From: Rebecca billardiae RCC1528
Taxonomy: Eukaryota > Protista > Haptophyta
Direction: 5' to 3'
Length of the DNA stretch: 64,000 bases
Assembly: GCA_965240325.2 (NCBI GenBank)
Contig: OZ251255.1
Location: 186,001-250,000, forward strand
The position numbers were made by a program, and so were the translations under genes. Of this stretch, positions 411 through 62,023 are shown one piece after another (position 1 is the stretch's first letter; every line of letters begins with the position of its first letter). The notes beneath the pieces are model-generated. The model worked only from the letters and a program-made list of their open reading frames with translations. It made no database searches and had not been told where the DNA came from.

Positions 411-1356
411 CTAGCGCGCGCCAGCGTGCTGCCGCAGCTGCGCCACCTCCAGCTGCAGCTCGCGCGAGCGGCCGTCCACCCACTGCAGCGCGCCCAGGTG
501 CGCGTCGAGCACGCGCACGAGCTGGGAGAGCTCGGAGCCGCCGCCCAGCCCGCCGCCGAGCGCGTCGGCGGCCGCGGCGTCGGCCGCCGAGCCGCCGGCG
601 CCGCCGTCGTGGCCGGAGGCGCTGCCCGCGCCGCCGGCGGCGCGCGCCGCGCCGCCCGCGCGCCGGTTGAGCGCGCCGATCGCGGCGGCGAGCAGCCGCG
701 CGCTCTCCGCGAGCTCCGCGTCCGTCTCCTCCGCCAGCCGGTACGCGGCCTGCGGGGTAGGGGTAGGGTTAGGGGTAGGGTTAGGAGCAGGGGTAGGGTT
801 GGGGGCGGAGGGCCATGTCGAGAGGGGGCTGTGGTGAGGCGCGCGCGGGCGAGGCGTGGGCGCGCGGTGCACGCCCTCCCCACCCTCGGCCCGACGGCGC
901 GGCCGCAGCACCGGGCACACGCGCGGCGCGCGCGCAGGCCGGGCGCTTTGCACTGCGCTGCGCTCGCTCACCGCGCGCTCGACGGCGGCCGCCTCGCCCT
1001 CGAGCGAGAGCTCGCGCTCCACCGCGCCCTCGAGCTTGGTCAGGTGGTCGTGCAGCGCGTCCTGATGCTCAAGCACAAGCTCGAGCTCGGCGTCGAGCTC
1101 GTCCTGCGCCTCGCGCACCTGCAGGGGGGCACGCGCGGGTCGTGTGTCGCGCTCGGCGGTGGGCGCGCGTGCGCACACGCGCGCGCGCCGCCACCGAGGC
1201 GCGCACAGTCCGGGCGCACAGTCCGGGGGGACGGACGCAGCGGCGCGCGGCGCGCCCGCACGCGCCGCACCCGTAGCACGTCCTCGTGCAGCGACACGAT
1301 GGTGGCGCGGTTGGCCGCGATGGCCGAGTCCCACGCGCGCAGCTGCGCCGCCTGCC
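411..1356 (-). pseudogene. NUP62: 5'-truncated Nup62 copy 1 (Nsp1-type coiled-coil exons only, no FG region)
   Basis: Collinear with 8754..9696, including both introns. Homology stops abruptly at 1356, and there is no in-frame ATG upstream. Confidence 0.8.
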
Positions 1357-1821
1357 TGCAGCAAGGTAAGCGTCCGCAGAGCGATCAAACATCGGGCGCG
1401 CAGCATCGTTGCGCCATCCTCTTCCATTGCACGAGCGCTGCTGGACGAGGTAAACGTCGTCACGCTCGTGGCAGATGCGCTGCGCTTCATGTGCCTGCTC
1501 GAGCAGCGCGTGCCCACCCTCGATCGCGAGTGGCACACGCTCCTGCACTGCGCGCGCGCGCACCGCACCGAGAGCTCCTGATACCGCCTGATGGCCGAAC
1601 GTGCGAGTGCCGGACCTGGCGCGCGGAGCGGCGAGCGCCGACGAGCGCTTGGACCTGGACGCGCTGTTGCGCAGCGTGGCGGCCGTGCACGACGCCGACG
1701 CGACCTTCGCGAACCCGCTGGGGAAATATTGCGACAGCACTGGCACGGCCCGCCGACCCCCCCGCCCGCCAGGGCAGAGTTTACTGTTCTTTGTGCAGTG
1801 TTGGATGGCGTCAATCACGCC
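1357..1821 (+). pseudogene. Unrelated coding-like fragment fused to the Nup62 piece (weakly F-box-like), interrupted; also at 5166..5630
   Basis: Reads ALLDEVNVVTLVADALRFMCLLEQRVPTLDREWHTLL, then a stop, then LDLDALLRSVAAVHDADATFANPL in another frame. Confidence 0.25.
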
Positions 1822-1860
1822 TTAACCAAGTGTGCACGTTAAAACATAGTATAAACTGTA
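1822..1860 (+). mobile_element. TTAA plus putative left terminal inverted repeat (copy 1)
   Basis: TTAA|CCAAGTGTGCACGTTAAAACATAGTATAAACTGTA; inverted match to 49320..49359. Confidence 0.6.
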
Positions 1861-2076
1861 GTTGTTACGAGCCCCATGAACAGTGATCAGTACCCGCGCT
1901 TACCCTGATATATATATATGGCATGTCGTCAGGGTTGATATATGGTGATGCCAAGCCGAACGATTTCATGCGCGATGTGCGCTGAATCCGCTGATAATCC
2001 TGATATCATCCAGGACGGCGCCGGATCTCCGCCGCCGGGAAAGCGCAGCGCAGCGGCCTAGCCAACTCCCACCGTG

Positions 2077-3174
2077 ATGCGGCAGGTGCGCGCTCTTCGG
2101 GCGCACACGTACGGCGATGCCCGGGATGTCCTGGACGTGAGCAGGGTCCCCGCTCCGACGCGCGCATCGCCGGGCGAGGTGCTCGTTCTCGTCGCATGTG
2201 CCTCACTCCGCGTGGCTGACACGTTTCTGCTCACGGGCAAGCACCCAATGTCACCGCCGGTGCCGTACACGCCTGGCCATGATGCGGCCGGTGTCGTGGC
2301 GGAAGTCGGCGCGGGCGTTACACATGTGAGCGTCGGCGATCGTGTGTGGCTCTGCGGCGCTTCGAGTGGCGCGTGTGCCGAGCTGTGCGTGTGTGACGCC
2401 AACCGTGTGCATGCGCTGCCTGAACACGTGACTTTTGCCGAGGCGGCTGCGATGCCAACGCCGCTGCTCACAGCGCATCGTGCGCTGTTCACCAAGGCGC
2501 GTGTGCGGCCTGGCGAGACTATCTTGGTGCACGGTGCGTCGGGGGCTACCGGCCTAGCCGTCGTCACGCTCGCTGCCGCGCACGGCTGCGAAGTCGTGGG
2601 GACGGCATCCACGCCCGAGGGATCGCGAGCCGTGCGCGCCGCAGGTGCCAAGACCGTGCTTGACCACTCGCAGTGGCGTGAGCCCGACCAGCCGATCAGC
2701 CTGCCACTGGGCGTGCACCCGACGCTGGTCATCGAGATGGCGGCCCACGCCAACCTGCAGAAGGCGGTGGAGGCTGTCGCGCAGGGCGGGCACGTGCTCG
2801 TCATCGGCTCTCACGGCTCACTCGACTTCAGCCCTCGAGCGCTCATGAACCGCGAGGCAACTGTGAGCGGCATGATGGTGCACCACGCATCCGACCAGGA
2901 GTACCGCAGCGCAGTGAACGACGTGCAGGCGCTGATCGCGCGACCGGGTGCAATCGTGCTGCCCCGCGTCGAGGCCGAGTACCCGCTGGAGGAGGCCATC
3001 GCTGGCTTCGACCGCGTGCAGAAGCGAATTGGCCCGCCTGGCTCTTCTGGGCGTGTCGTGCTGCGCGTGCACTCAGATGAGGAGATGGGGAGCGTCGCAG
3101 CCACATACTTGGCCGCCGCCAGTGCTGGCATGCAGCCATCACACGCCAGCACGGCGGCGCGCAATAAGCAGTGA
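2077..3174 (+). CDS. CRYZ: Zeta-crystallin / NADPH:quinone oxidoreductase (MDR superfamily), intronless, copy 1
   Basis: Motifs PYTPGHDAAGVV, GETILVHGASGATG (NADPH binding), IEMAAHANL and GSHGSLDFSPRALM match CRYZ/qor. Confidence 0.92.
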   Translation: MRQVRALRAHTYGDARDVLDVSRVPAPTRASPGEVLVLVACASLRVADTFLLTGKHPMSPPVPYTPGHDAAGVVAEVGAGVTHVSVGDRVWLCGASSGACAELCVCDANRVHALPEHVTFAEAAAMPTPLLTAHRALFTKARVRPGETILVHGASGATGLAVVTLAAAHGCEVVGTASTPEGSRAVRAAGAKTVLDHSQWREPDQPISLPLGVHPTLVIEMAAHANLQKAVEAVAQGGHVLVIGSHGSLDFSPRALMNREATVSGMMVHHASDQEYRSAVNDVQALIARPGAIVLPRVEAEYPLEEAIAGFDRVQKRIGPPGSSGRVVLRVHSDEEMGSVAATYLAAASAGMQPSHASTAARNKQ

Positions 3175-4219
3175 TTCAATAAGGCGACCGGCGGGACCGC
3201 GCCCGCCGGTCGCGCGCCATATCAGTCCATCGGCCGTGAAACGACGCTGCCACCGACTAGTGCGCCGCGGGGTCCAGGCTCCAGCCGGCAGTTGCCGCGC
3301 AGCACGCTGCCGCCGAGAATGCCGTCGTCGCCGTGAGAAGTCGCGCGTGCGGCATCCGAAGTGTGGCGTCAGTCCGAGACTCAGACAGCGCAGCGTCGTC
3401 ACTCGGATCGGATTAGCCAGCATCATGAAGCCGCAGTAGTGTCAGTGTGTCACGGCGGATCTGCGGCCGACAGATCGTCATCGTCATCAGTAGCAGCATG
3501 CCGCCACTCGATCATCCGGTACGTCGGCGGCGGCTTAGGCGGTCTTTACTCGTACTATACCGGGACAGGAGACGACGCGGGTAGTAACCGCTGCTATAGC
3601 CAATATCTCTCGGGAGGCGCCCCGGACTGGAGCGCCTATATATATCGGTCAGCCGACCCGGCGCACGGTGGCCCCCGGCCGCGAGTGCCGCCCGGCGACA
3701 GCGGCGGCCTGACGGCCGGGCCCGGGGGCGGCGGGCCCGACTCGGTGGCACCGTGTGAGCGGCGGGGCGTGACCGTATTCATAACATGCACTACGGCCAC
3801 TAGGTCACTTACACGACGGCGACGTGACTTATGTGACGGCGCTCGTCAGTCTCAGCAACTAGCAGTGCGCCGCAGCCTGCCCGCTGAGCCTCGGGCGCAA
3901 TCGCAGGCGCCGGCCAGACTGAACCGCGTACGTACAGTCGTGCGCTGTACGTCATATGCTGATGCGACTCGGCCCGGTTGCGGCGCAGGCGGTCAGCCCG
4001 CGGGCACCAGACGAGTGCTGTATCCGATCGACTGACGAGTAGATGGATGGCGGCCGACGCCGCGCAGAAGGCGCAGCAGATGCCATGCGGATCCGGGCCG
4101 CGGCAGCCGGCAGCGCGCGCCGCCAGCGCGCTGAGGCGCGCCAGGTCGTCCGCGGCGGCGCCGGCCACGCCGGCCGGTTGGCGGGCGCGCGCGCGGCGCT
4201 GGCTGCGTGGGCCTAGCCG

Positions 4220-5165
4220 CTAGCGCGCGCCAGCGTGCTGCCGCAGCTGCGCCACCTCCAGCTGCAGCTCGCGCGAGCGGCCGTCCACCCACTGCAGCGC
4301 GCCCAGGTGCGCGTCGAGCACGCGCACGAGCTGGGAGAGCTCGGAGCCGCCGCCCAGCCCGCCGCCGAGCGCGTCGGCGGCCGCGGCGTCGGCCGCCGAG
4401 CCGCCGGCGCCGCCGTCGTGGCCGGAGGCGCTGCCCGCGCCGCCGGCGGCGCGCGCCGCGCCGCCCGCGCGCCGGTTGAGCGCGCCGATCGCGGCGGCGA
4501 GCAGCCGCGCGCTCTCCGCGAGCTCCGCGTCCGTCTCCTCCGCCAGCCGGTACGCGGCCTGCGGGGTAGGGGTAGGGTTAGGGGTAGGGTTAGGAGCAGG
4601 GGTAGGGTTGGGGGCGGAGGGCCATGTCGAGAGGGGGCTGTGGTGAGGCGCGCGCGGGCGAGGCGTGGGCGCGCGGTGCACGCCCTCCCCACCCTCGGCC
4701 CGACGGCGCGGCCGCAGCACCGGGCACACGCGCGGCGCGCGCGCAGGCCGGGCGCTTTGCACTGCGCTGCGCTCGCTCACCGCGCGCTCGACGGCGGCCG
4801 CCTCGCCCTCGAGCGAGAGCTCGCGCTCCACCGCGCCCTCGAGCTTGGTCAGGTGGTCGTGCAGCGCGTCCTGATGCTCAAGCACAAGCTCGAGCTCGGC
4901 GTCGAGCTCGTCCTGCGCCTCGCGCACCTGCAGGGGGGCACGCGCGGGTCGTGTGTCGCGCTCGGCGGTGGGCGCGCGTGCGCACACGCGCGCGCGCCGC
5001 CACCGAGGCGCGCACAGTCCGGGCGCACAGTCCGGGGGGACGGACGCAGCGGCGCGCGGCGCGCCCGCACGCGCCGCACCCGTAGCACGTCCTCGTGCAG
5101 CGACACGATGGTGGCGCGGTTGGCCGCGATGGCCGAGTCCCACGCGCGCAGCTGCGCCGCCTGCC
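4220..5165 (-). pseudogene. NUP62: 5'-truncated Nup62 copy 2
   Basis: Same sequence as copy 1 at offset 3809. Confidence 0.8.
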
Positions 5166-5630
5166 TGCAGCAAGGTAAGCGTCCGCAGAGCGATCAAACA
5201 TCGGGCGCGCAGCATCGTTGCGCCATCCTCTTCCATTGCACGAGCGCTGCTGGACGAGGTAAACGTCGTCACGCTCGTGGCAGATGCGCTGCGCTTCATG
5301 TGCCTGCTCGAGCAGCGCGTGCCCACCCTCGATCGCGAGTGGCACACGCTCCTGCACTGCGCGCGCGCGCACCGCACCGAGAGCTCCTGATACCGCCTGA
5401 TGGCCGAACGTGCGAGTGCCGGACCTGGCGCGCGGAGCGGCGAGCGCCGACGAGCGCTTGGACCTGGACGCGCTGTTGCGCAGCGTGGCGGCCGTGCACG
5501 ACGCCGACGCGACCTTCGCGAACCCGCTGGGGAAATATTGCGACAGCACTGGCACGGCCCGCCGACCCCCCCGCCCGCCAGGGCAGAGTTTACTGTTCTT
5601 TGTGCAGTGTTGGATGGCGTCAATCACGCC

Positions 5631-5667
5631 TTAACCAAGTGTGCACGTTAAAACATAGTAAACTGTA
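5631..5667 (+). mobile_element. TTAA plus putative left terminal inverted repeat (copy 2)
   Basis: TTAA|CCAAGTGTGCACGTTAAAACATAGTAAACTGTA; equals the reverse complement of 49320..49359 apart from a 3-bp indel. Confidence 0.6.
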
Positions 5668-5883
5668 GTTGTTACGAGCCCCATGAACAGTGATCAGTAC
5701 CCGCGCTTACCCTGATATATATATATGGCATGTCGTCAGGGTTGATATATGGTGATGCCAAGCCGAACGATTTCATGCGCGATGTGCGCTGAATCCGCTG
5801 ATAATCCTGATATCATCCAGGACGGCGCCGGATCTCCGCCGCCGGGAAAGCGCAGCGCAGCGGCCTAGCCAACTCCCACCGTG

Positions 5884-6981
5884 ATGCGGCAGGTGCGCGC
5901 TCTTCGGGCGCACACGTACGGCGATGCCCGGGATGTCCTGGACGTGAGCAGGGTCCCCGCTCCGACGCGCGCATCGCCGGGCGAGGTGCTCGTTCTCGTC
6001 GCATGTGCCTCACTCCGCGTGGCTGACACGTTTCTGCTCACGGGCAAGCACCCAATGTCACCGCCGGTGCCGTACACGCCTGGCCATGATGCGGCCGGTG
6101 TCGTGGCGGAAGTCGGCGCGGGCGTTACACATGTGAGCGTCGGCGATCGTGTGTGGCTCTGCGGCGCTTCGAGTGGCGCGTGTGCCGAGCTGTGCGTGTG
6201 TGACGCCAACCGTGTGCATGCGCTGCCTGAACACGTGACTTTTGCCGAGGCGGCTGCGATGCCAACGCCGCTGCTCACAGCGCATCGTGCGCTGTTCACC
6301 AAGGCGCGTGTGCGGCCTGGCGAGACTATCTTGGTGCACGGTGCGTCGGGGGCTACCGGCCTAGCCGTCGTCACGCTCGCTGCCGCGCACGGCTGCGAAG
6401 TCGTGGGGACGGCATCCACGCCCGAGGGATCGCGAGCCGTGCGCGCCGCAGGTGCCAAGACCGTGCTTGACCACTCGCAGTGGCGTGAGCCCGACCAGCC
6501 GATCAGCCTGCCGCTGGGCGTGCACCCGACGCTGGTCATCGAGATGGCGGCCCACGCCAACCTGCAGAAGGCGGTGGAGGCTGTCGCGCAGGGCGGGCAC
6601 GTGCTCGTCATCGGCTCTCACGGCTCACTCGACTTCAGCCCTCGAGCGCTCATGAACCGCGAGGCAACTGTGAGCGGCATGATGGTGCACCACGCATCCG
6701 ACCAGGAGTACCGCAGCGCAGTGAACGACGTGCAGGCGCTGATCGCGCGACCGGGTGCAATCGTGCTGCCCCGCGTCGAGGCCGAGTACCCGCTGGAGGA
6801 GGCCATCGCTGGCTTCGACCGCGTGCAGAAGCGAATTGGCCCGCCTGGCTCTTCTGGGCGTGTCGTGCTGCGCGTGCACTCAGATGAGGAGATGGGGAGC
6901 GTCGCAGCCACATACTTGGCCGCCGCCAGTGCTGGCATGCAGCCATCACACGCCAGCACGGCGGCGCGCAATAAGCAGTGA
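5884..6981 (+). CDS. CRYZ: Zeta-crystallin / NADPH:quinone oxidoreductase, copy 2
   Basis: Protein identical to copy 1. Confidence 0.92.
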   Translation: MRQVRALRAHTYGDARDVLDVSRVPAPTRASPGEVLVLVACASLRVADTFLLTGKHPMSPPVPYTPGHDAAGVVAEVGAGVTHVSVGDRVWLCGASSGACAELCVCDANRVHALPEHVTFAEAAAMPTPLLTAHRALFTKARVRPGETILVHGASGATGLAVVTLAAAHGCEVVGTASTPEGSRAVRAAGAKTVLDHSQWREPDQPISLPLGVHPTLVIEMAAHANLQKAVEAVAQGGHVLVIGSHGSLDFSPRALMNREATVSGMMVHHASDQEYRSAVNDVQALIARPGAIVLPRVEAEYPLEEAIAGFDRVQKRIGPPGSSGRVVLRVHSDEEMGSVAATYLAAASAGMQPSHASTAARNKQ

Positions 6982-8753
6982 TTCAACCGCCCGCGTCGCG
7001 CGCCGGCGCATAGATCATCAGTCCGCGCCGCATCGGCCGTGAACGGGCGACGCTGCCACCGACGAGTGCGCCGCGCGGGGTCCAGGCTCCAGCCGGCAGT
7101 TGCCGCGCAGCGCGCTGCCGCCGAGATCGAATGCCGTCGTCGTGAGATCGCGCGTGCGGCATCAAGTGTCGTCATCATTCGGACTCAGACAGCGCGCGTC
7201 ACTGATGATTATATTAGCCATTAAGCCGCCCGAGTGTCCGACTCACGGCAGGATCTGCGGCCGCCACTCAGATCATCGTCAGTAGCAGCATGCCGCCACT
7301 CATCGGTACGTCGGCGGCTGGCGGTCTTTGTACCGGGACGGACCGGCGGGTATAACCGCTATAGCCAATATCTCTGGAGGCGCCCGGGACTGGAGCGCCT
7401 CGATATTCTTCAGCCGGCATGCCGCCTTCAAGCCTCCCTCCCCAAGATAGGTGCCAGCCCCCTCCTTCGAAGCGCGACGCAAACACGTGCGCTTGGGTGG
7501 GCACGCGCACAGATGCGCCGGCGCAAGGCGCAACCCCGCGCCCGTCCACTCTCCGCGCCGGGGGCGCGGCGCAGGAGGCGCGCCCGGCCGCAAGACTTCG
7601 CCGCAGGACGAAATGGCTGCCACTCGGTGCGGCGACCGTCGATAGGTTGCCTCTGCCCGCTGCTCGGGGGCCGCACCCGGCCACGGTCCTCGTGCGGCGT
7701 GTGATCCTCGTGTGTCGCACGAGCCTCTGCCTTCGTGGGCTCCGCGTTTGGTCCCGGCTCCGCCTGTCCTCTCCCTTCTGCACTGGCGCGCGCGCGCGCG
7801 CGCGGCGGCGATGACTGATCGTACTTCACACTCTTCCTGTCGCGCGACAGTGTACCTCTGCATCATACGTATTGCCCGTACGGCTGCATCCAAGTACGTT
7901 TGTACGTCCTGGATGTTCCATTTGCCAGCTACCTCTCTCCGAGGCCTCACGCGTTCGGCTGCCTACTGGGCCCTTGGCTGCCAGCTACGATCCGAATGGT
8001 GTCTGTCTCCTTGCGCGCGCGCGCGACGCGCGCGGCGCCGCCAACTCTGGTGAGAGCCTCCGCCTGGATCCTGCCTTACTGTCGGCCTCTACCGGCCGTC
8101 AATGGCCATGTTGCCAAGGGCCGCCGACGGTTGGCCCGACTAAAGTTCTCGTTAGACACTGTGGTCTAAGAGGGGATATATATCGGTCAGCCGACCCGGC
8201 GCACGGTGGCCCCCGGCCGCGAGTGCCGCCCGGCGACAGCGGCGGCCTGACGGCCGGGGGCGGCGGGCCCGACTGGCCGGGTGGTCAGCACGGCGTGACC
8301 GCGAGGCGGCGTGTGAATCACACTATAGCCACTACTCGACGCGACGAGTGACTTTGATCATTGATGTGACGGCGCTCGTCAGTCTCAGCAACTAGCAGTG
8401 CGCCGCAGCCTGCCCGCTGAGCCTCGGGCGCAATCGCAGGCGCCGGCCAGACTGAACCGCGTACGTACAGTCGTGCGCTGTACACGTCATATGCTGCGTC
8501 ACTCGGCCCGGTTGCGGCGCAGGCGGTCAGCCCGCGGGCACCGACGAGTGCTTAGTATCCGATCGACTGACGAGTAGATGGATGGCGGCCGACGCCGCGC
8601 AGAAGGCGCAGCAGATGCCATGCGGATCCGGGCCGCGGCAGCCGGCAGCGCGCGCCGCCAGCGCGCTGAGGCGCGCCAGGTCGTCCGCGGCGGCGCCGCC
8701 ACGCCGGCCGGTTGGCGGGCGCGCGCGCGGCGCTGGCTGCGTGGGCCTCGCCG

Positions 8754-11176
8754 CTAGCGCGCGCCAGCGTGCTGCCGCAGCTGCGCCACCTCGAGCTGCA
8801 GCTCGCGCGAGCGGCCGTCCACCCACTGCAGCGCGCCCAGGTGCGCGTCGAGCACGCGCACGAGCTGGGAGAGCTCGGAGCCGCCGCCCAGCCCGCCGCC
8901 GAGCGCGTCGGCGGCCGCGGCGTCGGCCGCCGAGCCGCCGGCGCCGCCGTCGTGGCCGGAGGCGCTGCCCGCGCCGCCGGCGGCGCGCGCCGCGCCGCCC
9001 GCGCGCCGGTTGAGCGCGCCGATCGCGGCGGCGAGCAGCCGCGCGCTCTCCGCGAGCTCCGCGTCCGTCTCCTCCGCCAGCCGGTACGCGGCCTGCGGGG
9101 TAGGGGTAGGGGTAGGGGTAGGAGGGAGTAGTGTTAGTGTTAGGGGCGGAGGGCCACGTCGAGAGGGGCTGTCGTGAGGCGCGCGCGGGCGGGGCGTGGG
9201 CGCGCGGTGCACGCCCTCCCCACCCTCGGCCCGACGGCGCGGCCGCAGCACCGGGCACACGCGCGGCGCGCGCGCAGGCCGGGCGCTTTGCACTGCGCTG
9301 CGCTCGCTCACCGCGCGCTCGACGGCGGCCGCCTCGCCCTCGAGCGAGAGCTCGCGCTCCACCGCGCCCTCGAGCTTGGTCAGGTGGTCGTGCAGCGCGT
9401 CCTGGTGCTCAAGCACAAGCTCGAGCTCGGCGTCGAGCTCGTCCTGCGCCTCGCGCACCTGCAGGGGGGCACGCGCGGGTCGTGTGTCGCGCTCGGCGGT
9501 GGGCGCGCGTGCGCACACGCGCGCGCGCCGCCACCGAGGCGCGCACAGTCCGGGCGCACAGTCCGGGCGGACGGACGCAGCGGCGCGCGGCGCGCCCGCA
9601 CGCGCCGCACCCGCAGCACGTCCTCGTGCAGCGACACGATGGTGGCGCGGTTGGCCGCGATGGCCGCGTCCCACGCGCGCAGCTGCCCCGCCTGCCGGCC
9701 GAACGCGTGCATGTGCGCGGCCAGCTCCGAGCGGGTGGCCTGAATGATTGACTGCAGCGTGGAGGACGCGTGGCGCGAGGGGAGGCGACTCGAGCCGCCG
9801 CACCCCGCCGCGCCCGACGCCGCCGCGCCGCCGCCGCCGCCGGAGCCGGCCGCGCCCGCCGCCGCGCCGAGTGCGCCGAGCCCGGCCGCGCCGCCGCCGC
9901 CGCCGCCGCCGCCGTGCGCCGCCGCCGCGCCCGCCGCGGCGGCGCCGCCCCCGGTGGCAGCGCCGGGCGTGCCGCCGCCGGCCGCCGCGCCGAACAGCGG
10001 CGCGGGCGTGCCGCCGCCGCCCGGCGGCGCCGGCGCGGCGCTGCTCGGTGCAAGCGGCGCGAGGCTGAACCCTAACCCGCCCGCCCCGCCGGCGCCGCCC
10101 GCGCCAGCGGCGGCGCCGCCGGCCGGCGGCGGCGCGGCGGCGGCGGCGGCGGCGGAGGTTGGTGCCAGGCCAGGCGCGCCGCCGGGCGCGGGCATCGCGA
10201 GGGAGGCGGGGGGCTGCGGCGCGCCGAACAGCGACGGCGCCGCCGCCGCGCTCGCCGCGGGCGGCGGCGCGCCGAAGAGCCCGGCGCCGGCCCCGGCACC
10301 CGCGGCGGCGGTTGGCGCGCCGAAGAGCCCGGACCCGGCCCCGGCGGCGGCGGTGGGCGCGCCGAAGAGCCCGGCCCCGGCCCCGGCACCAGCGGCGGCG
10401 GTGGGCGCGCCGCCGCCGCCGCCGGGCGGCGCGGCGGCGGTGGGCGGCGCGGCCGCGGACGCGCCAGGCAGCCCGCCGCCGCCGCCGCCGCCGAAGGAGA
10501 AGCCGCCGCCGGGCGCGGGCGCGGCGGGCTGCGCGGCGGAGGTGGGCGCGCCGCCGAACAGCCCGCACGCGCCGCCCGCCGCGCTCGACGCCGTCGGCGC
10601 CGCCGCGCCGAAGAGCGACGGCGGCGCGGCGCCGGCCGCGCCCGCCGCCGGGGTGGGCGCTCCGCCGCCGGCGGCGGCGGCGGCGCCGCCGGCACCGAGG
10701 CTGAAGGAGGGCGCGGCCGAGGCGGCGGGCGTGACGCCGCCACCGCCGAAGAGTGAGGGCGCGCCTCCGCCGCCCGGCGCGCCGCCGCCGCCGAAGAGCG
10801 ACGGCGCCGCCGCCGAGCTCGCCGGCGGCGCGCCAAACAGCGAAGGCGCCGCAGCCGCCGCGCCGCCGCCGCCCAGCGCGGGCGGCGCGGCGGAGGAGGG
10901 AGTGGGCGCGCCGCCAAAGCTGAAGGCGCCAGCGCCGGCCCCGCCCGCCGGCGCCGGCGCCGCGCCGCCAAAGAGCGACGGCCCCGCGCCCGCGCCCGCG
11001 GTCGGCGCGGCCGCGCCGCCGCCGCCGCCGCCAAACGCAAAGCCGCCGGGCGCGGGCGCGGCGGGCTGCGCGGCGGCGGCGCCGCCGGCGGGCGGCGCGC
11101 CAAACGAGAAGGCGCCGCCCCCCGCCGCGGGCGGCGCGCCGCCCTGCGCCGTCGGCGCGCCGAACGAGAAGCTCAT
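8754..11176 (-). CDS. NUP62: Nucleoporin Nup62/Nsp1; exons 11176-9611, 9458-9294, 9092-8754
   Basis: N-terminal FSFG/SLFG/GLFG repeats. The C-terminal part matches Nsp1_C (QLRAWD..IVSLHEDV, ELELVLEHQDAL, AYRLAEETD, VRVLDAHLGALQWVD). The GT-AG introns keep the frame. Confidence 0.93.
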
Positions 11177-11349
11177 CGGCGCGTGCGCGTGCGCTCGGTC
11201 GGGTCTGCGCTCGGCGCCGGCCCTCGTGCGCCGGGCTGGAGAGCTGCCGCTCCAGTGCCAAGTCCGGGGCGGGCACTCACGCGCGCCGGACTTGCTTGGG
11301 CTGTTCGAAGCGGGGCCACGCCACCGAGCGACCCGGGCGCTGGCGCGCG
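11177..11349. promoter_or_regulatory. Probable compact bidirectional promoter region
   Basis: 173 bp lie between divergent ATGs at 11176(-) and 11350(+). Confidence 0.5.
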
Positions 11350-14300
11350 ATGGCGGACGCGCGCCCGCGCGCCGACGGGCGCCCGCCGCCGCGGAACATC
11401 GTGGTGGACGTGAGCACGTCGTTCCACCTCGAGCGTGTGGGCAAGGTGACCGACAAGTGGCGCAGCACGTCCACGCCCGCCACGCCGCGCGCCGCGCCGC
11501 ACGCGCGCGCGTGCGGCGCGCTCGGCGCGGCCGGCGGCGCGGCCGACGCGCAACCGCCGCCGGGCTCGAGCCTCGACGCGCTCAACTCGGAGTACGTGCA
11601 CCGCGCGTACGCCGGGCTGGGCGGCACGGCGCCCGTCTTTGCGCGCCACGCGCCCGCCGGCGCGGCCGCCCCGCCCAAGCCGCCGCCGCCCACGCTCGCT
11701 GCGCTGCGCGGCGCATGCGGCGGCGGCGGCACGCCGCCGGCCGCGCCGTCCGCCGCCGCCGCGGCCGGCTCGCCGAGCGTGTCGCCGCCGCCGCCGGCGG
11801 GCGCTATCTTCGAGCTCTTCCGCCCCGAGCGCCCGCACCCCGCCGCGGCCGCCGCCGCCGCCGCCGCGCACGCCCGAGCCCGCTACGTGCCGCCGCCGCC
11901 GCTGCCCGCGCCGCAGCCGCAGCCGCAGCCGCCGACGTGCGCCGCCGGCGCGCGCGCCGCGCCGCCCGGCGCGCCAGCCCGGGCGGTCCCCGGGCTCTTC
12001 GCCGGTCTGGCGCTCACCGACGCCCGCGCAGGGGGGGTGCCGCCCGGCGCGCACGCCGGCGCTGAAGCGGCCGGGGCGGCGGCGCCGCCCGTGCGGGCAG
12101 CCTGCGGCGGCGCGCCGCCGGCTTGGCCGCCGCGCGCGTCTGGCGGGGCGGCGGTGGGCAGTGCGCCGGCGGCGCAGGGCGTGGGGGCGCTCTTTGGTGG
12201 CCTGTGCGTGCACGAGGCCGCGCCGAGCGGCGCCGACGCCACCGCCGCCTCGCTGCCGCCGGCGCCGGCCGCGCCGCAGCAGCGTGGGGCCGAGTGCGCT
12301 CGGCGGCGGCACGCGGCGGCGGGCGCGGCGGGTGCGGCGGGTGCGGCGGGTGCGGCGGGTGCGGCGGGTGCGGCGGCGGGGATGGCCGCCCCCGGCGGCA
12401 CGCGCGCAGCCGGTGGCGCGCACGGGGCCCCGCCCTGCGCGGGTGGTGGGGACGGCGGCCTCTTCAGCGGGCTCACACAGCTGGGCGCGCCAGCCGCGCC
12501 CTCGCCGTCAGCGGCGCGCGCCGCCGACGCGACAGCCGGCCTGGGCGGCGGCGCGGCGGCAGCAGGCGGCGGCGCGGCGGCAGCAGGCGGAGGCGCGGCG
12601 GCGGCATGCGGCGCCCCGGGCGCGGAGGGCGCGGCTGGCGCGCTGTTCGGGGGGCTCACCGTCGTCGCGGCCGATGCGGGGCCGGGCTGCGCGGCGGGCG
12701 GCGGCGCGGCGGCGGCGGCGGTGGCGGCGCAGCCAGACGCGCCGCATGGCGGCGGCGGCGGCGGCGGCGGCGGCAGCGGCTGCGGCAGCGGCCGCGGCCT
12801 CGGCGGCCGCGCCGGCTGTGCGGGCGGCGGTGGCTGCGGCGCTGTGGGCAGCAGCAGCTCGGCGCCGGCGCTCTTCGGCGGGCTGCAGCTGGTGGGCGCG
12901 GAGGGCTGCGCCGGCGGCGGCAGCGCGGCCGTGAGCGCGGGCGGTGGCAGCTGCTGCAGCCTCTTCGACGGACTGGCACTGGCGGGCGGCGGCGGCGGCG
13001 GCGCCGACGCGGCCGCGGCCGCGGGCGGCGGCGGCGCGGCGGCGGCGGGCGCCGCCGCCGGGAGCGGCGGCGCGCGCGGCGGTGGCGGCGATGGCGCGGC
13101 TTTGCCGCCCGCTGGCTCGGGGCTCGGGCTGGCGTGGATGGCGCACGCCGCCGAGTTCGAGGCGCTCGCCAACGAGTATGCCGGCCTCGGGCCGGACGGG
13201 GACGGGGCGGCGCCGGCCAATCAGAGCGCGGCAAGGCCGGGGCCGGGCGGGGCGCCGGCCAATCAGAGCGCGGCAGGGCCGGGGCTGGACACCGGCGGGC
13301 CCGGGGACGCCGCGGGCGTGGCCCTGGGCCCAGGCGGCGCGTGGGGCGCTGAGGACGCCGCGCCGCCGGCTTCTGCCGCACCGCCGCCGCGCGCCGCCGC
13401 GCGTTGGGCGGCGGCGGCGCGCGACGACGACGCGGCCGGCGCGGCGCGAGGCAGCGGGGGGGGCAGCGCCGATGGTGGCGGCGAGGGCGGGGGCGGCCTC
13501 TTCGCCGGCCTCGCGCTCGGCGCGGCGGCGGCGCCGCCCGACGGCGGTGCGCTGGAAGAAGCGCCGCCGCACGCGGCCGCCCCCGCGCGCCCCTGGGCGG
13601 GCGCCGCGCGCGCAGCCGGCGGCGGCGGCGATGGCGGCGGCGGGGACGCGCCGCTCGGCGCGTGCGGCGAGCGCGCGGACTGGCCTGGCGTGGACGCGGC
13701 GGACGACGGCGCGGCCGACTACGGCGAGCCCGCGCCCGTGGACGCGGCAGCCATCGTGCTCGGCCACGAGCAGCTGCCGGATGCCACCGGTGGCGCGGGC
13801 TTCATGGCGGCCGACGTCAAGGCGCCCGCCACGGCGCCCGTAACGGCCGTAACGGCCTCTGTAACGGCGCCCGTAACGGCCTCCGTCACGGCGGGATCTG
13901 GCACCGCGCGCGCGGGCGCGCGGACGGAGCGCGAGGCGGGAGGCGCGGCCGGCGCGGCGCGCCCGCCGCCCGCAGCACCGCGCGAGGCGGGCGTGGCGCA
14001 CGGCGCGGCGAGCGGCCGCCCGCCGCCGCCGCCGCCACCGCCGCCGGCAGGCGGCGCGGCCGCCGCCGCGCCGGGCCGCGACAGCCAGGCCCAAGCACAG
14101 GGGGGCGCGCCGCGCCGCTGGGAGCAGGTGTACGCGCAGCGGCAGCGCGAGCGCGAGGCGCTCGAGGCGGATGCAGACCGGCTCGCTGCGGCGGTGGGGA
14201 GCGCGCGCGCCGCGCACGACCGCTCGTCACGCGAGCTGGCGCGAGCCGCCGCCGAGCTGAGCGGCGCGCGCGAGCGGTGCGAAGCGGCGGCGGCGGCCAA

Positions 14301-22190: not shown

Positions 22191-25100
22191 CACGCGACGC
22201 CCGCGCGCGCGGCCGAGCCGAGTGGCGGCGGCAGCGGCGGCGGCTCGTTCGAGCGGCGTGCCGTGCGGCGCAGCCGCTCGCGCACGCCCTCGCCCGCGCC
22301 CTCCGCCGCCGACGGCGCCGCCAGCCCCACGCCCGCGGCCGGCGGCGGCGCCGGTCTGCCTCCGTTCGTGTCGCCTGCTCGCGCGGGCGAGGTCGATGAG
22401 GCCACGGGCGAGCGGCGCGGGACCACGATCCTGCCGCTGGCGAAGTCGCGCGGCTCGGGCGCGCTCGTCGCGCGGCGGCACTCGGAGGTGGTGCTGCCCT
22501 CGCCGCTCGACGCGCCGCTCGTCAGCGCCGCGCTCGACGGCGGCCGCGAGCAGCGCGCCGCCGGCCGCGGCCGCGCCGAGCGCGCGCGCGGCGCGACCAC
22601 TCAAAGCATGGGCTGCGTGCCGGCGGCGCGTCCGAACGAGCCCGCGGCTGCGCCGCTGGCGGAGCCGGCGGCGGCGGCGTCGCCGCGCACGCCGCCGCCG
22701 GTGCAGCTGGCCTCTGTGGCGTCGCCCAAGCCGCCGCTGCCGCTGCCGCCGCCGCCCGCCGGCGCGGGAGGCCCCGGCGCCGGCGCGGCGCCGTCGGCGG
22801 CTGGCCGGCAGCGGCTGCAGCCGCCCGCGGAGGGCGCGCGCAACCGGCGCTCCTCCGCCGAGCGCGCGGGCGGCAAGACCGAGGCCGTCTCCTCGCCCGG
22901 CGAGGTGCGCCGCACGCCCTCGCTGCAGCGCGCGCTCAAGCGCGGCACGGCCGCGGCCATCCTGCCAGGGGCGGCGCTGCGCGCGGCGCGCGCCTTCAGC
23001 TCTGCGCCCGAGTCGGGCGCAGCGGATGCAGCGGCCGCGGGCGCGCCCGCCGCGGCCGAGCCCGCGGACGGCGGCGCGCTGGAGCTCGGCGCGTCGCTCA
23101 CGAGCGCCGCTGCAGCCGCGCCCGACGGCGCCGCGCCCGCGCCGTCAGCAGGCGCCACCCCCGAGGGCGAGCCGTCCCTCCGTCCCGCTTCCCTCGAGCT
23201 TGAGCTAGGCCTTGAGCTGGACGGCGCCGAGCTGCCCTCGCCCTCGCCCACGCCCGCCCCGGTCCGGCTCGACCCTGTCGTCGACGGCGTCGCGACGTAC
23301 CTCCTCGAGTCCGGCCTCTTCGGCGCGTCCTGCCCGCGCGCCGACGCGCTCGCGGCCGCGCAGGGCGCGGGCGTGCGCTCGTGCCTCCGGTACGAGGGAA
23401 TCTATCGAGAAGGACTGCGCGGGGCGTTCATGTATGTGGTGCTCAAGGGGACGGTGCTGCTGCGCTCGTTCGACGGCGGCGAGCTCGTGCGGGTATGCGC
23501 CGCCGCCGCGCCGCGCGCGCGACCCATCCCGCCGCGCGACGCCGCGCGACCGCCGCGCCGCCGGCCGCGCGCGCGCTCGCGCGCGCCGACCCGCGTGTCC
23601 CGTAAGCCGACGCGCTCCGCACCGCGCCGCCTGCCTCGGCGCCCGCCGCCGTGCGCCGCAGGTGGGCCCGGGCGTGTGCATTGGCGAGGAGGCGTGCTGG
23701 CGCGTGCAGCAGGCCGCTGAGCACTCCAAGCTGCACGGCGTCGGCCTCGCTGTCGGGCTGGGCGTGCGCGCGAGCGCGCCGCGCGGCCCCCTGTCGGCGG
23801 CGTGTGGCGGCGGCGGCGCGGCGGCGGGGTCGCGCGGCGCGGGCGGCGCGGGCGCGGCGCAGCAGCAGGCGGCGCAGGGCGGCGCGCCGGCCGGCGTCGC
23901 CGCCGCCGCCAGGCCGGGCGGCGGTGGCGGCGGCGGCGAGTCGCTCTTCGAGGCGCTGCCTCGGCTGGCCAGCGCGACCGTGGGTGGAGACGGCGCGGTG
24001 CTCCTGGCCATTCCCTCCGAGGTGTGCGCGTGCCCGAGGCGCGTGTGCGCGTGTGCGCCCGCCCGCCGCCGCTCGCCCTCCCTCCCTCCGCCGACGTGTT
24101 ATTCACGTGTTCGCCCGCCGCCGCGCCGCGCCGCGCCGCCGCCCGCCCCCTTCTCTCGCAGGCGGTGCCCAAGGCGATCACGCGCGCGGTGCACACGCGC
24201 GTCGCCGCGCGGCTGCTCGCCGTGCACTCGGGCCCGCTCTTCTCCGCCATCGTCGCCGGCGCGCTCGCCGGCCAGGAGGACCAAACCGAGACGCTTTTGG
24301 AAAAGCTCGGCAGCTTATTCCAATTTAAATCGATCCCGACCGACGGCGTGATTTGCCGGCAGGGGCAGAACGCCGACGAGTTCTACGTGATGCTGCGCGG
24401 CTCGGCGAGGGTGCGCGCGGCGCGGCGGCGCCCACGGGCGGGGCGCCGGCGGCCGCCCGACGCCTTGCACGCGCGCGCGGATGCCGACGCCGCGCGCACC
24501 CTCGCCACCCGCGCCGCGCTCCGCCCTACTGACCATCCCCCTAACCCTAACCCCCTAACCCTAACTACCCTCCTTGCCCCCTTACCCTCCTTGCAGGTGC
24601 TCGTGTGGCTGGGCAAGCAGAAGGAGGCGATCCACGTGGGCACGATCACCGCGAAGGAGGGCGAGGGCACGCAGGCCGGCACCCGCCACTTCGGCGAGGC
24701 CGGCCTCATCGCCGCGGCGAACGCGCACGACGCGCCCCTGCCGGTGCGCACGGCGTCCATCATCGCCAACGAGCCGTGCTGGCTGCTCGTGCTGCCGCAG
24801 AAGAAGTACGCGGCGTTCAACAACCTGCTGCCCGGCGTGGACGGGCACTTTGCCAAGGCGAAGGTGTGCGCGCGCGCGCGCGCCACGCGCGCGCGCGGCC
24901 GCGGCGGCGCGGCACGCGGCCGCGCGCACGCCCGCCGCTTCCGAGCCGACCCCCCCTCCATCCGCTCCGCCCCGCCCGCGCCCGCGCCGCACGGCCGCGC
25001 GCGCGCGCGCGCAGGCGATCCAAGAGCAGCTCAACGCGGGGCTCAAGGTGCGCCGCGGCTTCATCGACAAGATCTTCGCGCGCAACTCGCAGGGCTCCGA

Positions 25101-56487: not shown

Positions 56488-56561
56488 ATGGCGACCGACT
56501 TTCTCGCGCGCTTCGGCGACAAGCTCTCCGTCGTGAACAAGGACGGCAGCGCCACGCGGCT

Positions 56562-56597
<36 letters not shown>

Positions 56598-59427
56598 AGC
56601 CGGCGCGGCGAGCGGCGCGCCTGACGGCGGCGCGCCCCTGCACCGCCCGCCTCCCACGCTGCGCGTGAGCGCGGACCGCCCGCCCGCCGCGCCGATGTAC
56701 GCGAGCACCCTCCACCGCGCGTCCGCGCCCAACCCGGCCGCCGCCCTCGGCGCCGACCCCCAAGTGATGGGCGGCGGCGGCGGCGGCGGCATGGCGGCCG
56801 GCGGCGCGGGCGCGCCCATGCCGCCGGCGGCGTACGGGCTGCCGCCGCAGGCTGGGCCTGCTGGCGCGTACGGCTCGCCCGCGCCGCACCAGGCGCACCA
56901 CCGCCACCACCACGCGATGCTAAGCGCGCTCGGCGGCGGCGGCGCGCTCGGCGGCGGCGGCGGCGGCGCGCTCGGCGGCGGCGCCGTGGGGTGTGCACCC
57001 GCCTACGCAGAGCAGCAGCCGCCGAGCGCGCAGCCGCCGCCCGCCGGCGGCCGCGCGCCGATGCCCGGCGCATCGGCCGCGGAGTACGCCGCCGCGCCGC
57101 CGCGCCGCGCGCCCGGGCTCGCGGAGCTGCACCGCCTGGCGGCGCAGGACGCCGCCTCCTTTCAGCCGTTCGTGAGCCCTAACCCTAACCCTAACCCTAA
57201 CCCTAACCCTAACCCTAACCTAGACGCCGCCTCCTTTCAGCCGTTCGTGAGCCCGCAGCCGCAGCAGCCGCCGCAGCAGTGGCAGCAGCAGCAGCAGTGG
57301 CAGCAGCAGCCGCAGCAGCAGCAGCAGCCGTTTGGGCGCGGCGGCGGCGCATATGGCGGCGGGCGCGCGCCGCCCGCACACGCGCACGCCGCTGCCTACA
57401 GCGGCGGCTATGGCGGCGGCATGTATGGCGGAGGCTATGGCTACGGCGATGGCGGCGGGCCCGGCGGCGCGATGGGTGGCGCACCCGTCGTGACCGGTGG
57501 CGCGCACGCATACACCGGCGCCAAGGGCCGCGCGCACGCGCACGCCACCCCGACGGCTGGCGGCGGCGGTGGCGGCGGTGGCGGCGGCTGGGCGGGCGGC
57601 GAGGGCGCGGCTGCGATGTGCGGTGGTGGCGCCGGTGCGGCGGCGCACCAGTTGCACTACCAGCACCAGCCGCAGCCACAGCCGCAGCAGCAGCCGCCGC
57701 CGCAGCAGTGGCAGCAGCAGCAGCCGCCGCCGCAGCCGCCGCAGCAGCGCGCGCCGCCTCGGGCGGCGAGCGGCGGCGGCGACGGCGGCGGCGGCGCCGC
57801 GCGCCGCGCCGCGCTCGGCGCCGAGGGCGGCGCGCGCGCCGGCGCGCGGCGCGGCTCGGAGCCTCCGCACACGATGGCGGCCCCTGCGCCGGGCGCGCGC
57901 GCCGCCGCCGCCGGGCGGCGCGCAGGTCGGGACGGCGGCGCGACCGCCGCGGGCTCGGGCGCGACGGCTGTCGCCGTCCGCCGCCGGCTGAGCGGGGGCG
58001 CGTCGCCCGGCGCGGGCGGCGCCGCGCCGCCGCCGCTGCGCGGCGCGCACGCCGACGCCGGCGGTTACGGCGACAGCTACTCCGCGCCCGCGGGCGGCAG
58101 GCGGCACGCTCGCTTCTCGGCCGACCCGAGCCCTAACCCTAACCCTAACCCTAGTCGGGCGGAGGCGCCGCCGGACGCTGGGGGCTCGCCCGGGCCTGCT
58201 GCACCCGGGCCGGGGCGCGGCGGCAGCTTTCGGCGCGGCGCGGCCGCCGCCGCGGCCGACGACGACGACGGCGGTGCAAACGCCAGCGCGGGCGGCGGCG
58301 GCGGCGGGCAGCAGCTGTACTACTCGCGCCGGCCGCGCGAGGCCAGCAGCGCGTACACACCCTACAAGGGGCGGCCGGACTCGACCTATGTGACGTTGGG
58401 CGTGCTGCGCCCTGACCCCAACTCCGACCCGGAGCTGCAGAGCAAGCGCGCCAACGCCAACAAGGTGCGCTGCGAGGGCGGGCTGCGCGGCGGGGCGAGG
58501 GCGGCTGTGGCTGCGGCGCCGCGCGCCTGCGCCGGGCCGGGTGTGTGCCGCCACGCCGCGCGCTGGCTGCTGCGTGCGTGCGTGCAGGCTGCTGCCGGGA
58601 GGCAGGCTGGGCGGCACCTGCTGCCGGGTGGCAGGCTGGGCGGCTGGGCAGGCGGGCTGGGCGGCTGGGGGGGCGGGCGCCGCGCGCGCGCGCCGGCGTG
58701 GTCGCTCGCTGCGCGGCCCGTTGGTCGGTGCCGCCGCCGAGCGCACGGCGCCTGCGCCCCCGCCCACCCACCACCTTCGCCCCCGCATCCCTCCCCCTCC
58801 CCCCCCCGCGCCCGCGCCCGCGCCCTCCTCGGCCCCCTCTCCTATTTCCTATTTGTGTGCGCTTTCTTTTTTCCTTCTTCCTTTTTCCTTTTGTGCTGTC
58901 TTCGCAGGTGAAGGTGTTCTCGCAGAACCTGCGCGCCATCAACAGGCGAGAGCTCGAGGCGGCCGCTCTCGAGCGCGAGCCGCCGCCGCCTCGGGAGCCG
59001 CCCAAGGAGCTCACGAAGGCGCAGAAGGTGCGCTCGGCCGGCCGGGGTGCTCGCGCCGCGCGCCGCCGCGCCCGCCCGGTGCCCCACACGACCCACCCCA
59101 CACCCTAACCCTAACCCTCGACCAACCGCCACCCACCCTACCTGACCCTGCCCGCAGGCCCGCGAGTACGCGCAGTCGGTCCCAAAGCCGAAGCCACGGC
59201 CACCGCCGCCGCCGCCACCGCAGGCCTCGCAGCCAAAAGGGCGGCGGCGCGCCCCGGGCAGCCCCGGCGGCGGCGGCTCGGACAGCGAAGCCGACGCGGA
59301 TGGAGAGGGCGCGGCGGCGGCAGAGGCAGAGGACCCGTTGGCGGCGCTCGAGCGGCGGCACGAGGAGCAGCGGCAGCGCGCGCTGGAGATCAAGGCGCAG
59401 CTCGGGATGGTCGCCGCGGACGGATGA
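56488..59427 (+). CDS. JHY: JHY-like ciliary protein; introns 58465-58907, 59028-59157 (possible extra intron 57172-57240)
   Basis: The C-terminal pattern YTPY..LGVLRPD..K|VKVFSQNLRAIN..QK|AREYAQSVPKP..LAALERRHEEQR follows the JHY domain layout. Confidence 0.72.
57148..57254 (+). repeat. (CCCTAA)7 telomeric tract flanked by a 32-bp direct duplication
   Basis: GACGCCGCCTCCTTTCAGCCGTTCGTGAGCCC occurs at 57148-57179 and 57223-57254; the telomeric units span 57177-57218. Confidence 0.95.
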
Positions 59428-59848: not shown

Positions 59849-62023
59849 ATGCTGCTCGCGACGATGCGCGCCGCGCAGCGCGCCGCGCGCGCCCTCGCTG
59901 GCAGGCCGACGCCCGCCACTGCGCTCCGGCTCGGCCGGCTCGCCGAGCGCGGCGGCGCCATCGGCTCGCACGCGCGGCGTGCGCTCAGCACACCGCCGCC
60001 ACCGCCGCCGGGCGCGCCGCCGGGCGGCGTCGGCGGCGCGGGCGCGGGCGCGGGCGCCGCCGGCTCGACCGCGGCGATCGTCGAGGTGAACCGCGGCAAC
60101 TTTGAGCAGCTCGTGCTGCGCGCGTCGATGGAGGACCCGCCCGTCGGCGGCGCGGTGATCATCGACGCGTACGCCGACTGGTGCGAGCCGTGCAAGCAGC
60201 TCACCCCCAAGCTGGAGAGACTGGTGCTCGCATCGGTGCGCGCGCGACGTGGACGTGCGCGTGGCGGGGTGGCGCCGCGCGGCGTGACCGCCCGAGCTGG
60301 AGCCGGTGAACGGCGCACCGCGTGGCCCTCGCGCGCCCCGCCGGCGCTCCCGGGCCCCGCGCGGCTGCCGCCCGTCCTCACCACGCACACACGCACACGC
60401 GCGCGCGCCTCCCGTGCGCGCGCGCCCCCGCCGCATCAAAAACGAACAACCCTTCCAATTGGGCTCTACGCAGGGCGGCGCGGTGCGGCTGGCCAAGCTG
60501 AACGTGGACGCGGAGCAGGAGCTCGCCGCCTCGCTGCAGATCAGCCAGCTGCCGACGGTGCTGCTGGTGCACAAGGGCAAGCTGGCCGACTCCTTCACCG
60601 GGGCGGTGCCGGACGAGCAACTCGCGCAGGTGCGGCCCAACCCTAACCCTAACCCTAGCCCTCACCCTAGCCCTCACCTGGGCCCGGCGGCAGCGGCCCA
60701 GCCCGGCACGTGAAGCGGCCCGCGCCCTCGCCTCCCTAACCCTAACCCGCCTGGGTGAGGCCGGCCGCCTCTGGCACTGCCGGCGCGGCGCGGTGGGCGG
60801 GGAGGATGCCGCCGGCTGCGCGGCCGCTGCGCCCCGCTGCCTCCACTCCAGCCCACGCACCCGCGCCCAACCACGCCCTCACCCTAGCCCTAACCCTAGC
60901 CCACGCACCCGCGCCCAACCGCGCACGTCTCCGCCGCGCCGCCGCGCCGCGCGCACGGCAGTTTGTGACCAAGGCGGTGCAGCTCGCTGGCGGCGCGGGG
61001 TCGGGCGAGCGCGCGCTGCAGGAGGCGACGGCCGCGCTCGAGGCGGGTGAGATGGAAAAGGCAGAGGTGCGCACCGCCTGTGCACGCGCGGCGCGCCCTG
61101 CTGCGCCGTGCCCGCGCCGCATGCACGGTGGTGGACGCGGGCACAGGCGGTGGCCTCGGCTGCGTGGCGCAGTGGGCCGCCCGCGCGCCGCGGTGACACC
61201 GGCCGTATCGTGCGCCGCGGCCCGGTGCAAGACCCGGCGCGTGCGGCCGCCAGCCGGGCGGCTGGCCCCGCGCGACCACTGACGGGCGTCACTGCCGCCC
61301 GCGCCCGCCCCCCCGCCCCTGGCGCCGCCAGGGCCTGTTCCACGCGCTGAGCCGGCTGCCGGAGTACGCTGCGGACGCCACCGCCGGCCTGGCGATGGTC
61401 GCCCTGCGCGCTGGCGACGAGGCCACGGCCAAGACGCTGGTGCGTTGTCGCGGGCGGGCGCGCGCGTGCGTGTGCGCGGCGGCGGGACGCTCGGCGGCGC
61501 GGCCGCGCAGCCCGCGCGCCGCACGCGCGAACGGCGCTCCGCGCTCGCGCACGCGCCCCTGCCTGCTGCCACCTCATCCGCACGCCCCTTTTTCTGCTCC
61601 CCCGCGCGCACGGCTGACCGGCAGGTGGCGAGGCTGCACGAGGTGCATGCGGATTCGATCGAGCGGCCGCTGCCGCGCCAGGCGCGCGCGCAGCTGGAGC
61701 TGGCCGAGGCGGCGGCGGAGGGCGGCGGCGGGGGCGGCGCGGGTGGCGGCGGCGCCGACCTCGACTCGCTGCGCGCGGCGGCGGCGGCGGCGCCCAAGGG
61801 CGAGGCGGGCGCGGAGCCGCGCTTCGCGCTCGCGCAGGCGCTCACCGCGCGCGGCGAGGCGGCGGAGGCCATCGAGCTTCTGCTCGCCATCCTGCGCGAC
61901 GACCACGGCTGGGCCGAGGGCAAGGCGAAGGAGCTGCTCTTCAAAACGTTCGACTCGCTCGGCGCGGGGCACGAGCTGACCAAGCGCGGCCGGCGCCGCC
62001 TCGCCAACCTGCTCTTCAACTGA
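59849..62023 (+). CDS. cnoX: CnoX/YbbN-type thioredoxin-TPR chaperedoxin, probably mitochondrion-targeted; introns 60236-60473, 60630-60961, 61067-61331, 61440-61624
   Basis: Arg/Ala-rich presequence, IIDAYADWCEPCKQLTPKLE, LAKLNVD, and the C-terminal AIELLLAILRDDHGW..AKELLFKTFDSLG..GRRRLANLLF typical of YbbN. Confidence 0.88.

Follow-up and report, generated by a model that had tools for sequence, protein, structure and literature searches.

A telomere-repeat insert between duplicated target copies in a coding exon of a haptophyte alga: a probable, translated repair scar or a candidate intron

I describe here a short array of telomere-type hexamers that sits inside the first coding exon of a JHY-like gene in the haptophyte Rebecca billardiae RCC1528, on a stretch of 64,000 nucleotides from contig OZ251255.1 (assembly GCA_965240325.2, positions 186,001 to 250,000 of the forward strand) that will be called the window and within which all coordinates are counted. 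The array is bracketed by two exact copies of its target, the resulting gain reads in frame and without a stop, and a second insert of the same architecture lies close by in the same window. I lean towards the view that this is a young and real interstitial telomere-repeat insertion, a repair scar that for the most part stays in the mRNA and adds 25 residues to the protein. That the insert arose by break repair, with addition of telomere repeats and duplication of the target, is well supported, and a probable enzyme and a probable order of events can also be proposed. The parts of the insert are as follows.

57148 to 57179, plus strand: copy 1 of the 32-bp target-site duplication, containing CAG (57163-57165) and GTGAGC (57172-57177)
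57177 to 57222, plus strand: telomere-type array (CCCTAA)7.3 with its TA junction, read in frame as (PN)6
57223 to 57254, plus strand: copy 2 of the 32-bp duplication, supplying CTCCTTTCAG (ending at 57240) and a second GTGAGC (57247)

The exact direct repeat (GACGCC...GAGCCC) has its two copies 75 nucleotides apart from start to start, and the array between them matches the hexamer at 100% from 57177 to 57220, followed by a TA dinucleotide at 57221-57222 before copy 2 begins. Since the first CCC of the array is also the last three nucleotides of copy 1, the length of the duplication is given as 29-32 bp. The site thus carries the marks of a modified break: a 32-bp duplication, a CCC in register with the repeat at one junction and a TA at the other. 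A sequence-only reading of this stretch had already described the two copies, the telomere array and the in-frame gain of 75 bp, and all three lie where it had placed them. No third copy of the 32-bp repeat occurs in the window with up to three mismatches, and shuffled sequences lead one to expect 0, while telomere-type 15-mers give 19 matches in the window and 0 in 100 shuffles (the GC content of the window is 64-87%). Apart from the telomere hexamer, the insert contains no repeats, open reading frames (ORFs) or terminal inverted repeats (TIRs), and it shows no transposon features. The hexamer array is uninterrupted and stands at an internal site. The window contains no chromosome end, and that TTAGGG is the telomere repeat of the host is taken from the haptophyte literature. 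The C-rich strand of the 57177-57222 array is the sense strand, and the G-rich strand is antisense with its 5' end at copy 2. The added 75 bp keep the frame of the plus-strand ORF with no stop, which reads ...AAQDAASFQPFVSP-NPNPNPNPNPNPNL-DAASFQPFVSPQPQQ, so that in translation NPNPNPNPNPNPNL is followed by a second DAASFQPFVSP and then by QPQQ.

The host is a three-exon gene with its ATG at 56488 and the insert in exon 1. Its one true ortholog among the proteins searched is a 580-residue protein from a JGI contig, here P0001, whose precomputed annotation is Pfam JHY (PF15261).

56488 to 58464, plus strand: exon 1 of the JHY-like gene, an open frame of 659 codons with the insert counted, G/A/P/Q-rich and for the most part of low complexity
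58465 to 58907, plus strand: intron 1, 443 nt, AAG/GTGCGC ... TTCGCAG/GTG, with P0001 continuous across it at residues 475/476
58908 to 59027, plus strand: exon 2, 40 codons, aligning with P0001 residues 476-516
59028 to 59157, plus strand: intron 2, 130 nt, in which CCCTAA repeats in sense orientation occupy 59102-59118, at 43-49 nt from its 3' splice site
59158 to 59427, plus strand: exon 3 with the stop TGA (59425-59427), the C-terminal part of the JHY domain

The 50 residues at the C-terminal end of exon 1 align with P0001 residues 427-475, and P0001 residues 551-579 align within 59158-59424 of exon 3; this alignment across the exons confirms the introns 58465-58907 and 59028-59157 as well as the stop at 59425-59427. 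Exons were compared one by one, and the domain score therefore refers to exon 3 rather than to the whole protein: searched singly, exon 3 matches Pfam JHY with E 1.4e-4 and 22.8 bits, under the 27-bit cutoff. The name JHY, which the sequence-only reading had given to the gene, is upheld by this weak match together with the colinear P0001 over three exons, and homology marks it as a probable JHY-like, cilium-related gene. An exhaustive search of representative proteins returned three weak matches, with P0001 as the sole real homolog; P0002 was a low-complexity match. The insertion site itself falls in a G/A/P/Q-rich low-complexity stretch of exon 1 that does not align to P0001, and word-index protein searches with the whole of exon 1 and with residues 165-260 found nothing. 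The protein collections searched contained no transcript-derived protein of the JHY-like gene.

The insert is not alone, since telomere-type tracts of at least 11 nt stand at seven independent places in the window, and at 7/7 of these the C-rich strand is the one in the transcript (roughly p 0.016, two-sided). Three places are exonic (10068, 57177 and 58131), each in an open Pro-Asn frame, and four are intronic (24539, 59102, 60639-60898 and the duplicated minus-strand intron 750-971 / 4559-4780), where the 3' splice site is only tens of bases away or the tracts adjoin the donor. The sequence-only reading had suggested looking for further (CCCTAA)n flanked by direct repeats, and a flank-repeat scan of all tracts in the window brought to light a second clear duplication-bracketed insert, 3.6 kb from the first. 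Of the two features below, the other is a second tract in exon 1, which has neither a flanking duplication nor a frame-preserving GT-AG pair around it.

58131 to 58153, plus strand: second tract in exon 1, (CCCTAA)3.8, in the same PN frame, reading PNPNPNPS
60852 to 60920, plus strand: another insert of this class, where a 21-bp stretch and its exact copy (60852-60872 and 60900-60920) enclose ACG plus CCCTCA CCCTAG CCCTAA CCCTAG

The four units at 60852-60920 are slightly decayed, and the insert lies in non-coding DNA, likely within an intron (60630-60961) 3' of the thioredoxin domain in the adjacent gene; the exons of that gene cover positions 8-43 and 50-99 of Pfam Thioredoxin. The process is thus recurrent, and it enters non-coding sequence that was already there as well as exons, rather than making introns. 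The window introns that bear tracts are 750-971 and 4559-4780 on the minus strand and 24411-24596, 59028-59157 and 60630-60961 on the plus strand, with the tracts mostly 19-52 nt upstream of the 3' splice site. The exonic tract at 10068-10078 is 11 nt long and reads LNPNP in a 773-codon Pro/Ala-rich open frame (9744-12065, plus strand).

A third example comes from the environment. The weak protein match P0003 led to a TARA metagenome scaffold, L001, with a CS-domain gene in which an exact 12-bp duplication, CGCTTCGACCAG (817-828 and 892-903), surrounds ten decayed CCCTAA-like units, and the gain is again 75 bp and in frame. In the genomic orthologs L003 and L004, at about 89% protein identity and with the upstream intron kept, the site is empty and reads without interruption ...TTCGACCAGGGCGCGG... 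Judged from these alignments, the comparison is filled/empty evidence for the class of insert rather than for the JHY locus itself. The L001 insert starts with GT and ends with the duplicated CAG, such that its exact excision would restore the ancestral WDRFDQ/SAAL. From the same lineage comes another metagenome contig, L005, which has the left junction in common with L001 and diverges inside the repeat; at 3440-3649 the first 55 nt or so of the insert give way to some 80 nt that are unrelated and then to a further telomere-like array. Assembly may have mis-joined this contig through such arrays, or it may represent a rearranged allele; it is uninformative on splicing in L001. Further along L001, at 945-1027, sense CCCTAA-type repeats follow ...GGGGATGCGG at the point where L003 and L004 continue coding; either the same gene received a further insertion some 50 bp downstream of the first, or the contig breaks here. 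At this point, a target G and the inserted TAACCC create a donor-like GTAACC site. A relative of the L001 gene product, P0005, has the C-terminus ...GRGKLQQTLTLTLSQSLTRTRT, which looks like a gene call running into an intron that starts with telomere-like repeats in the CTAACC frame.

Now the question is whether the 75 nucleotides stay in the message. The sequence-only reading had seen in them the birth of an intron, with splice-like signals that are indeed present, namely GTGAGC at 57172-57177, seven CTAAC and CTCCTTTCAG with its end at 57240, and its arithmetic for the removal of 57172-57240 is correct. A second pair of ends emerged from a gene model, and both candidates have GT...AG ends and keep the frame on removal. 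Position weight matrix (PWM) scores are given for each.

57172 to 57240, plus strand: hypothetical 69-nt intron of the sequence-only reading; once it is removed, +6 nt (PF) remain; the last CTAAC has its branch A at 57218, a distance of 22 nt to the AG; PWM donor 4.3, acceptor -0.3
57172 to 57258, plus strand: alternative hypothetical 87-nt intron, from the gene model; acceptor CCCGCAG/CCG; in frame, deletes VSPQ relative to the pre-insertion state; acceptor PWM 4.6

The splice PWMs rest on 15 introns checked by hand. The same 15 seeded a conservative gene model, whose use was confined to statistics of lengths and signals and did not extend to evidence of splicing. A self-trained gene model was discarded, as it diverged into hundreds of tiny GC-AG 'introns'. 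For lengths, the sample was 20 credible window introns of 85-443 nt with a median of about 200.

Retention would ask nothing of the gene: the insert reads through with no stop and no frameshift and so disrupts nothing, and being in frame and stop-free it does not need to be spliced. A stop-free PN frame together with a length that is a multiple of three, which has a chance of roughly 2/9 without any constraint and which constitutive splicing would not call for, speaks for translation. Translation is also favoured over splicing by the tracts at 58131 and 10068, which lie in the same open PN frame, the former with no GT-AG pair that would preserve it. Kept in the mRNA, the 75 nt would yield a Pro-Asn loop and a repeated 11-residue segment, which a disordered low-complexity region could probably tolerate. 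The candidate introns themselves compare poorly with those around them, 69 nt being shorter than all 20 credible introns and 87 nt about as short as the shortest of them (85 nt), and where the 15 reference acceptors score 4.3-12.4, the one at 57240 has -0.3 and the one at 57258 has 4.6, at the low end. Moreover, 42.6 kb of predicted exon contain 321 exonic GT-AG pairs that score at least as high as the candidate at both donor and acceptor. A CTAAC is dispensable here, as 9/15 reference introns do without it, and none of the 20 established introns showed residual flank duplication above control level.

Several observations weigh against retention. The donor GTGAGC is used by native introns as well, and its PWM score of 4.3 is within the native span of 3.5-8.7; the last CTAAC, at 22 nt from the AG, is inside the native range of 19-52 nt; the tail of the insert is as C-rich as native intron tails; and the RNA across the insert is unstructured (z +1.5). 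In addition, my unsupervised gene models excised the segment, PWMs from 15 introns and lengths from 20 are small samples, and the in-frame argument is weak if the insertion is too young for selection to have acted. Nor was an insert-free allele or ortholog of the JHY locus found, either in the protein collections or with an exact 26-nt flank pattern in metagenome contigs. The insert resembles the 3' regions of this genome's introns, and some splicing may occur.

The strongest rival is a nascent intron, in which GTGAGC at 57172, a CTAAC of the array and the AG at 57240 or 57258 would be used in the majority or a sizeable part of the transcripts, with a net change of +2 residues (PF) or -4 (VSPQ). 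I regard this as possible though doubtful. The three kinds of signal are all there and look like native ones: GTGAGC donors do begin introns 750-971, 4559-4780 and 9093-9311, sense CCCTAA tracts lie 19-52 nt from the AG in 6/15 reference introns, and to the scores already given may be added that both of my gene models removed the segment. The L001 analogue, with its GT start and duplicated CAG end, shows a geometry in which exact removal restores the ancestral reading, and the recognised mechanisms of intron gain include an imprecise one based on duplicated latent sites and one that accompanies break repair (PMC3443670). However, set against these points are not only the dispensability of splicing, the shortness of both candidates, the acceptor at 57240 that falls under every reference acceptor, the equally good exonic decoys and the clean flanks of established introns, but also the insert at 60852-60920, which shows tracts entering pre-existing introns; such entry is by itself a sufficient explanation for introns that bear telomere tracts.

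A broader proposal, which I hold to be speculative and on balance unlikely, is that new spliceosomal introns in this haptophyte lineage arise repeatedly from telomerase-type inserts with target duplications. A sense insert would bring CTAAC branch sites and a C-rich tract, and after a target G also a GTAACC donor, with the duplicated target supplying the missing splice site; the JHY locus would then be a nascent, at least partly spliced and still undecayed intron, and the L001 insert an older one that could be excised exactly.

Returning to the preferred reading of a repair scar, its origin can be sketched in a few conditional steps. Either a break or two staggered nicks in the JHY-like exon 1 would have exposed an antisense 3' end at 57223, to which telomerase, as the most likely enzyme, would have added TAGG and then TTAGGG units. 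Pairing of the final GGG with the CCC that closes copy 1 (GGG/CCC microhomology) may then have allowed the end to be rejoined, which would have left 29-32 bp of target on both sides of the insert. The three youngest tracts in the window all end CCCTA/G where the G-rich strand would be primed (57220-57223, 58150-58155 and 60895-60900), and this common right junction suggests a fixed starting phase of synthesis, with an ambiguity as to whether the G belongs to the target or to the repeat. This is the part of the sequence-only interpretation that has stood, as telomere addition at a repaired break with target duplication is backed by the pure array, the three nucleotides in register, the second insert with its 21-bp duplication, the filled and empty sites of L001 and its relatives, and the mammalian precedent (PMC2246262); the splicing that it had attached to this origin I consider the less probable fate of the segment.

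Other routes could lead to the same product, among them the capture of a telomeric fragment by end joining, templated copying of the 32 bp of the polymerase-theta type, and reverse transcription by telomerase, primed at a nick and with the second nick staggered, much as in retroelements. For staggered breaks that are simply filled in, duplications of 21-32 bp are long; imprecise joining fits the irregular right junction, where CC-TA precedes copy 2; and the mammalian study leaves fragment capture open while documenting reverse transcription of telomerase RNA at breaks (PMC2246262). Yet the arrays are pure and of a single orientation, three nucleotides are in register at the left junction, and the CCCTA/G right junction shared by the three young tracts suggests a fixed start of synthesis and not random fragments, so that I find these routes quite improbable, even if they are not decisively separable here from telomerase healing of a two-ended break. 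That the 75 bp are an artefact of assembly or polishing and not in the organism's DNA is hardly credible, for although telomere repeats and short exact duplications are hard for assemblers, the junctions are clean, the insert is in frame, the same architecture recurs 3.6 kb away with a different duplication and once more on a metagenome scaffold obtained independently from short reads, whose relatives have the site empty, and no known artefact yields telomere repeats within exact target duplications.

The nearest known system is that of short interstitial telomeric sequences (ITS) at repaired double-strand breaks in primates and rodents, where hexamers are inserted in one step and the loci show target duplications in 5-16% of cases and microhomology in register (Nergadze et al., 2007; PMC2246262; and the group's 2004 work that it cites). 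The insert in the JHY-like gene shares with mammalian ITS the pure hexamer array, the non-telomeric site, the target duplication and the break-end nucleotides in register; it differs in that the host is a haptophyte-type alga and the site a coding exon that is translated or translatable, that duplications of 21-32 bp seem common rather than a minority, and that all tracts in the window are C-rich in the transcript. Intron gain by break repair (PMC3443670) is alike in having filler DNA at a staggered break, flanked by direct repeats and within a gene, but those introns were shown by gene models or ESTs (expressed sequence tags), whereas the present one is a candidate, in frame and with telomere repeats as filler. 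The 'imprecise' variant of tandem genomic duplication, described in the same source (PMC3443670), likewise takes the donor from copy 1 and the acceptor from copy 2 of an exon stretch that has been doubled, and adds nucleotides through latent sites (+6 here). Unlike that variant, the JHY locus has 43 bp of foreign repeat between copies that contain no AGGT, and it is the insert rather than the duplication that would furnish a branch site and a pyrimidine tract. Introner elements of Micromonas, Aureococcus and dinoflagellates, as reportedly described by Huff, Zilberman and Roy in 2016 and by Gozashti and colleagues in 2022, are said to provide splice sites jointly from the element and its target-site duplication. 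The L001 analogue has this same geometry of element and duplication; in contrast to introners, there is no element family with TIRs, the insert consists of telomere hexamers and the duplications vary in length (12, 21 and 32 bp). An introner or transposon-derived intron was rejected as a candidate for this reason: in place of a multi-copy element with TIRs and a fixed duplication length, the inserts hold hexamers only, with duplications of 32 and 21 bp in the window and of 12 bp in L001. Closer to home, the genome of the coccolithophore Calcidiscus leptoporus contains pervasive interstitial telomeric tracts, which that study treats as an assembly nuisance (PMC13518057). TTAGGG tracts are thus scattered in that haptophyte genome as well, but the passages considered give no account of flank duplications, exon or intron location or strand bias. 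In the literature searched, I found no report that ties telomere repeats to intron gain.

Telomere repeats at breaks are known from mammalian genomes, mostly in non-coding DNA, and observed cases of intron birth are rare. An undecayed scar in an algal coding exon, a second within a few kb and a third in the environment with an empty site in sister lineages make the process unusually easy to study, and the JHY locus insert, the 21-bp case at 60852-60920 and the environmental filled/empty pair are new here. They raise the questions of how often telomerase or an equivalent acts at internal breaks, of why the C-rich strand is always the one in the transcript, and of whether such inserts serve as tolerated, flexible Pro-Asn loops or as raw material for new introns. 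If the segment is not spliced, the locus still documents how repair scars add low-complexity loops to proteins.

Two further features of the window can be noted. The neighbouring gene (59850-62020, plus strand) has its thioredoxin domain behind a presequence-like N-terminus; its introns are 60236-60473 and probably 60630-60961, 61067-61331 and 61440-61624, and the second of these contains three telomere-type tracts. At the other end of the window, a minus-strand gene segment is present in three tandem copies (about 200-3000, 4000-6900 and 8500-9700), about 3.8 and 4.5 kb apart, which include two introns (750-971 / 4559-4780 / 9093-9311 and 1119-1270 / 4928-5079 / 9459-9610), and copies 1 and 2 are nearly identical, down to the intronic telomere-like tract.

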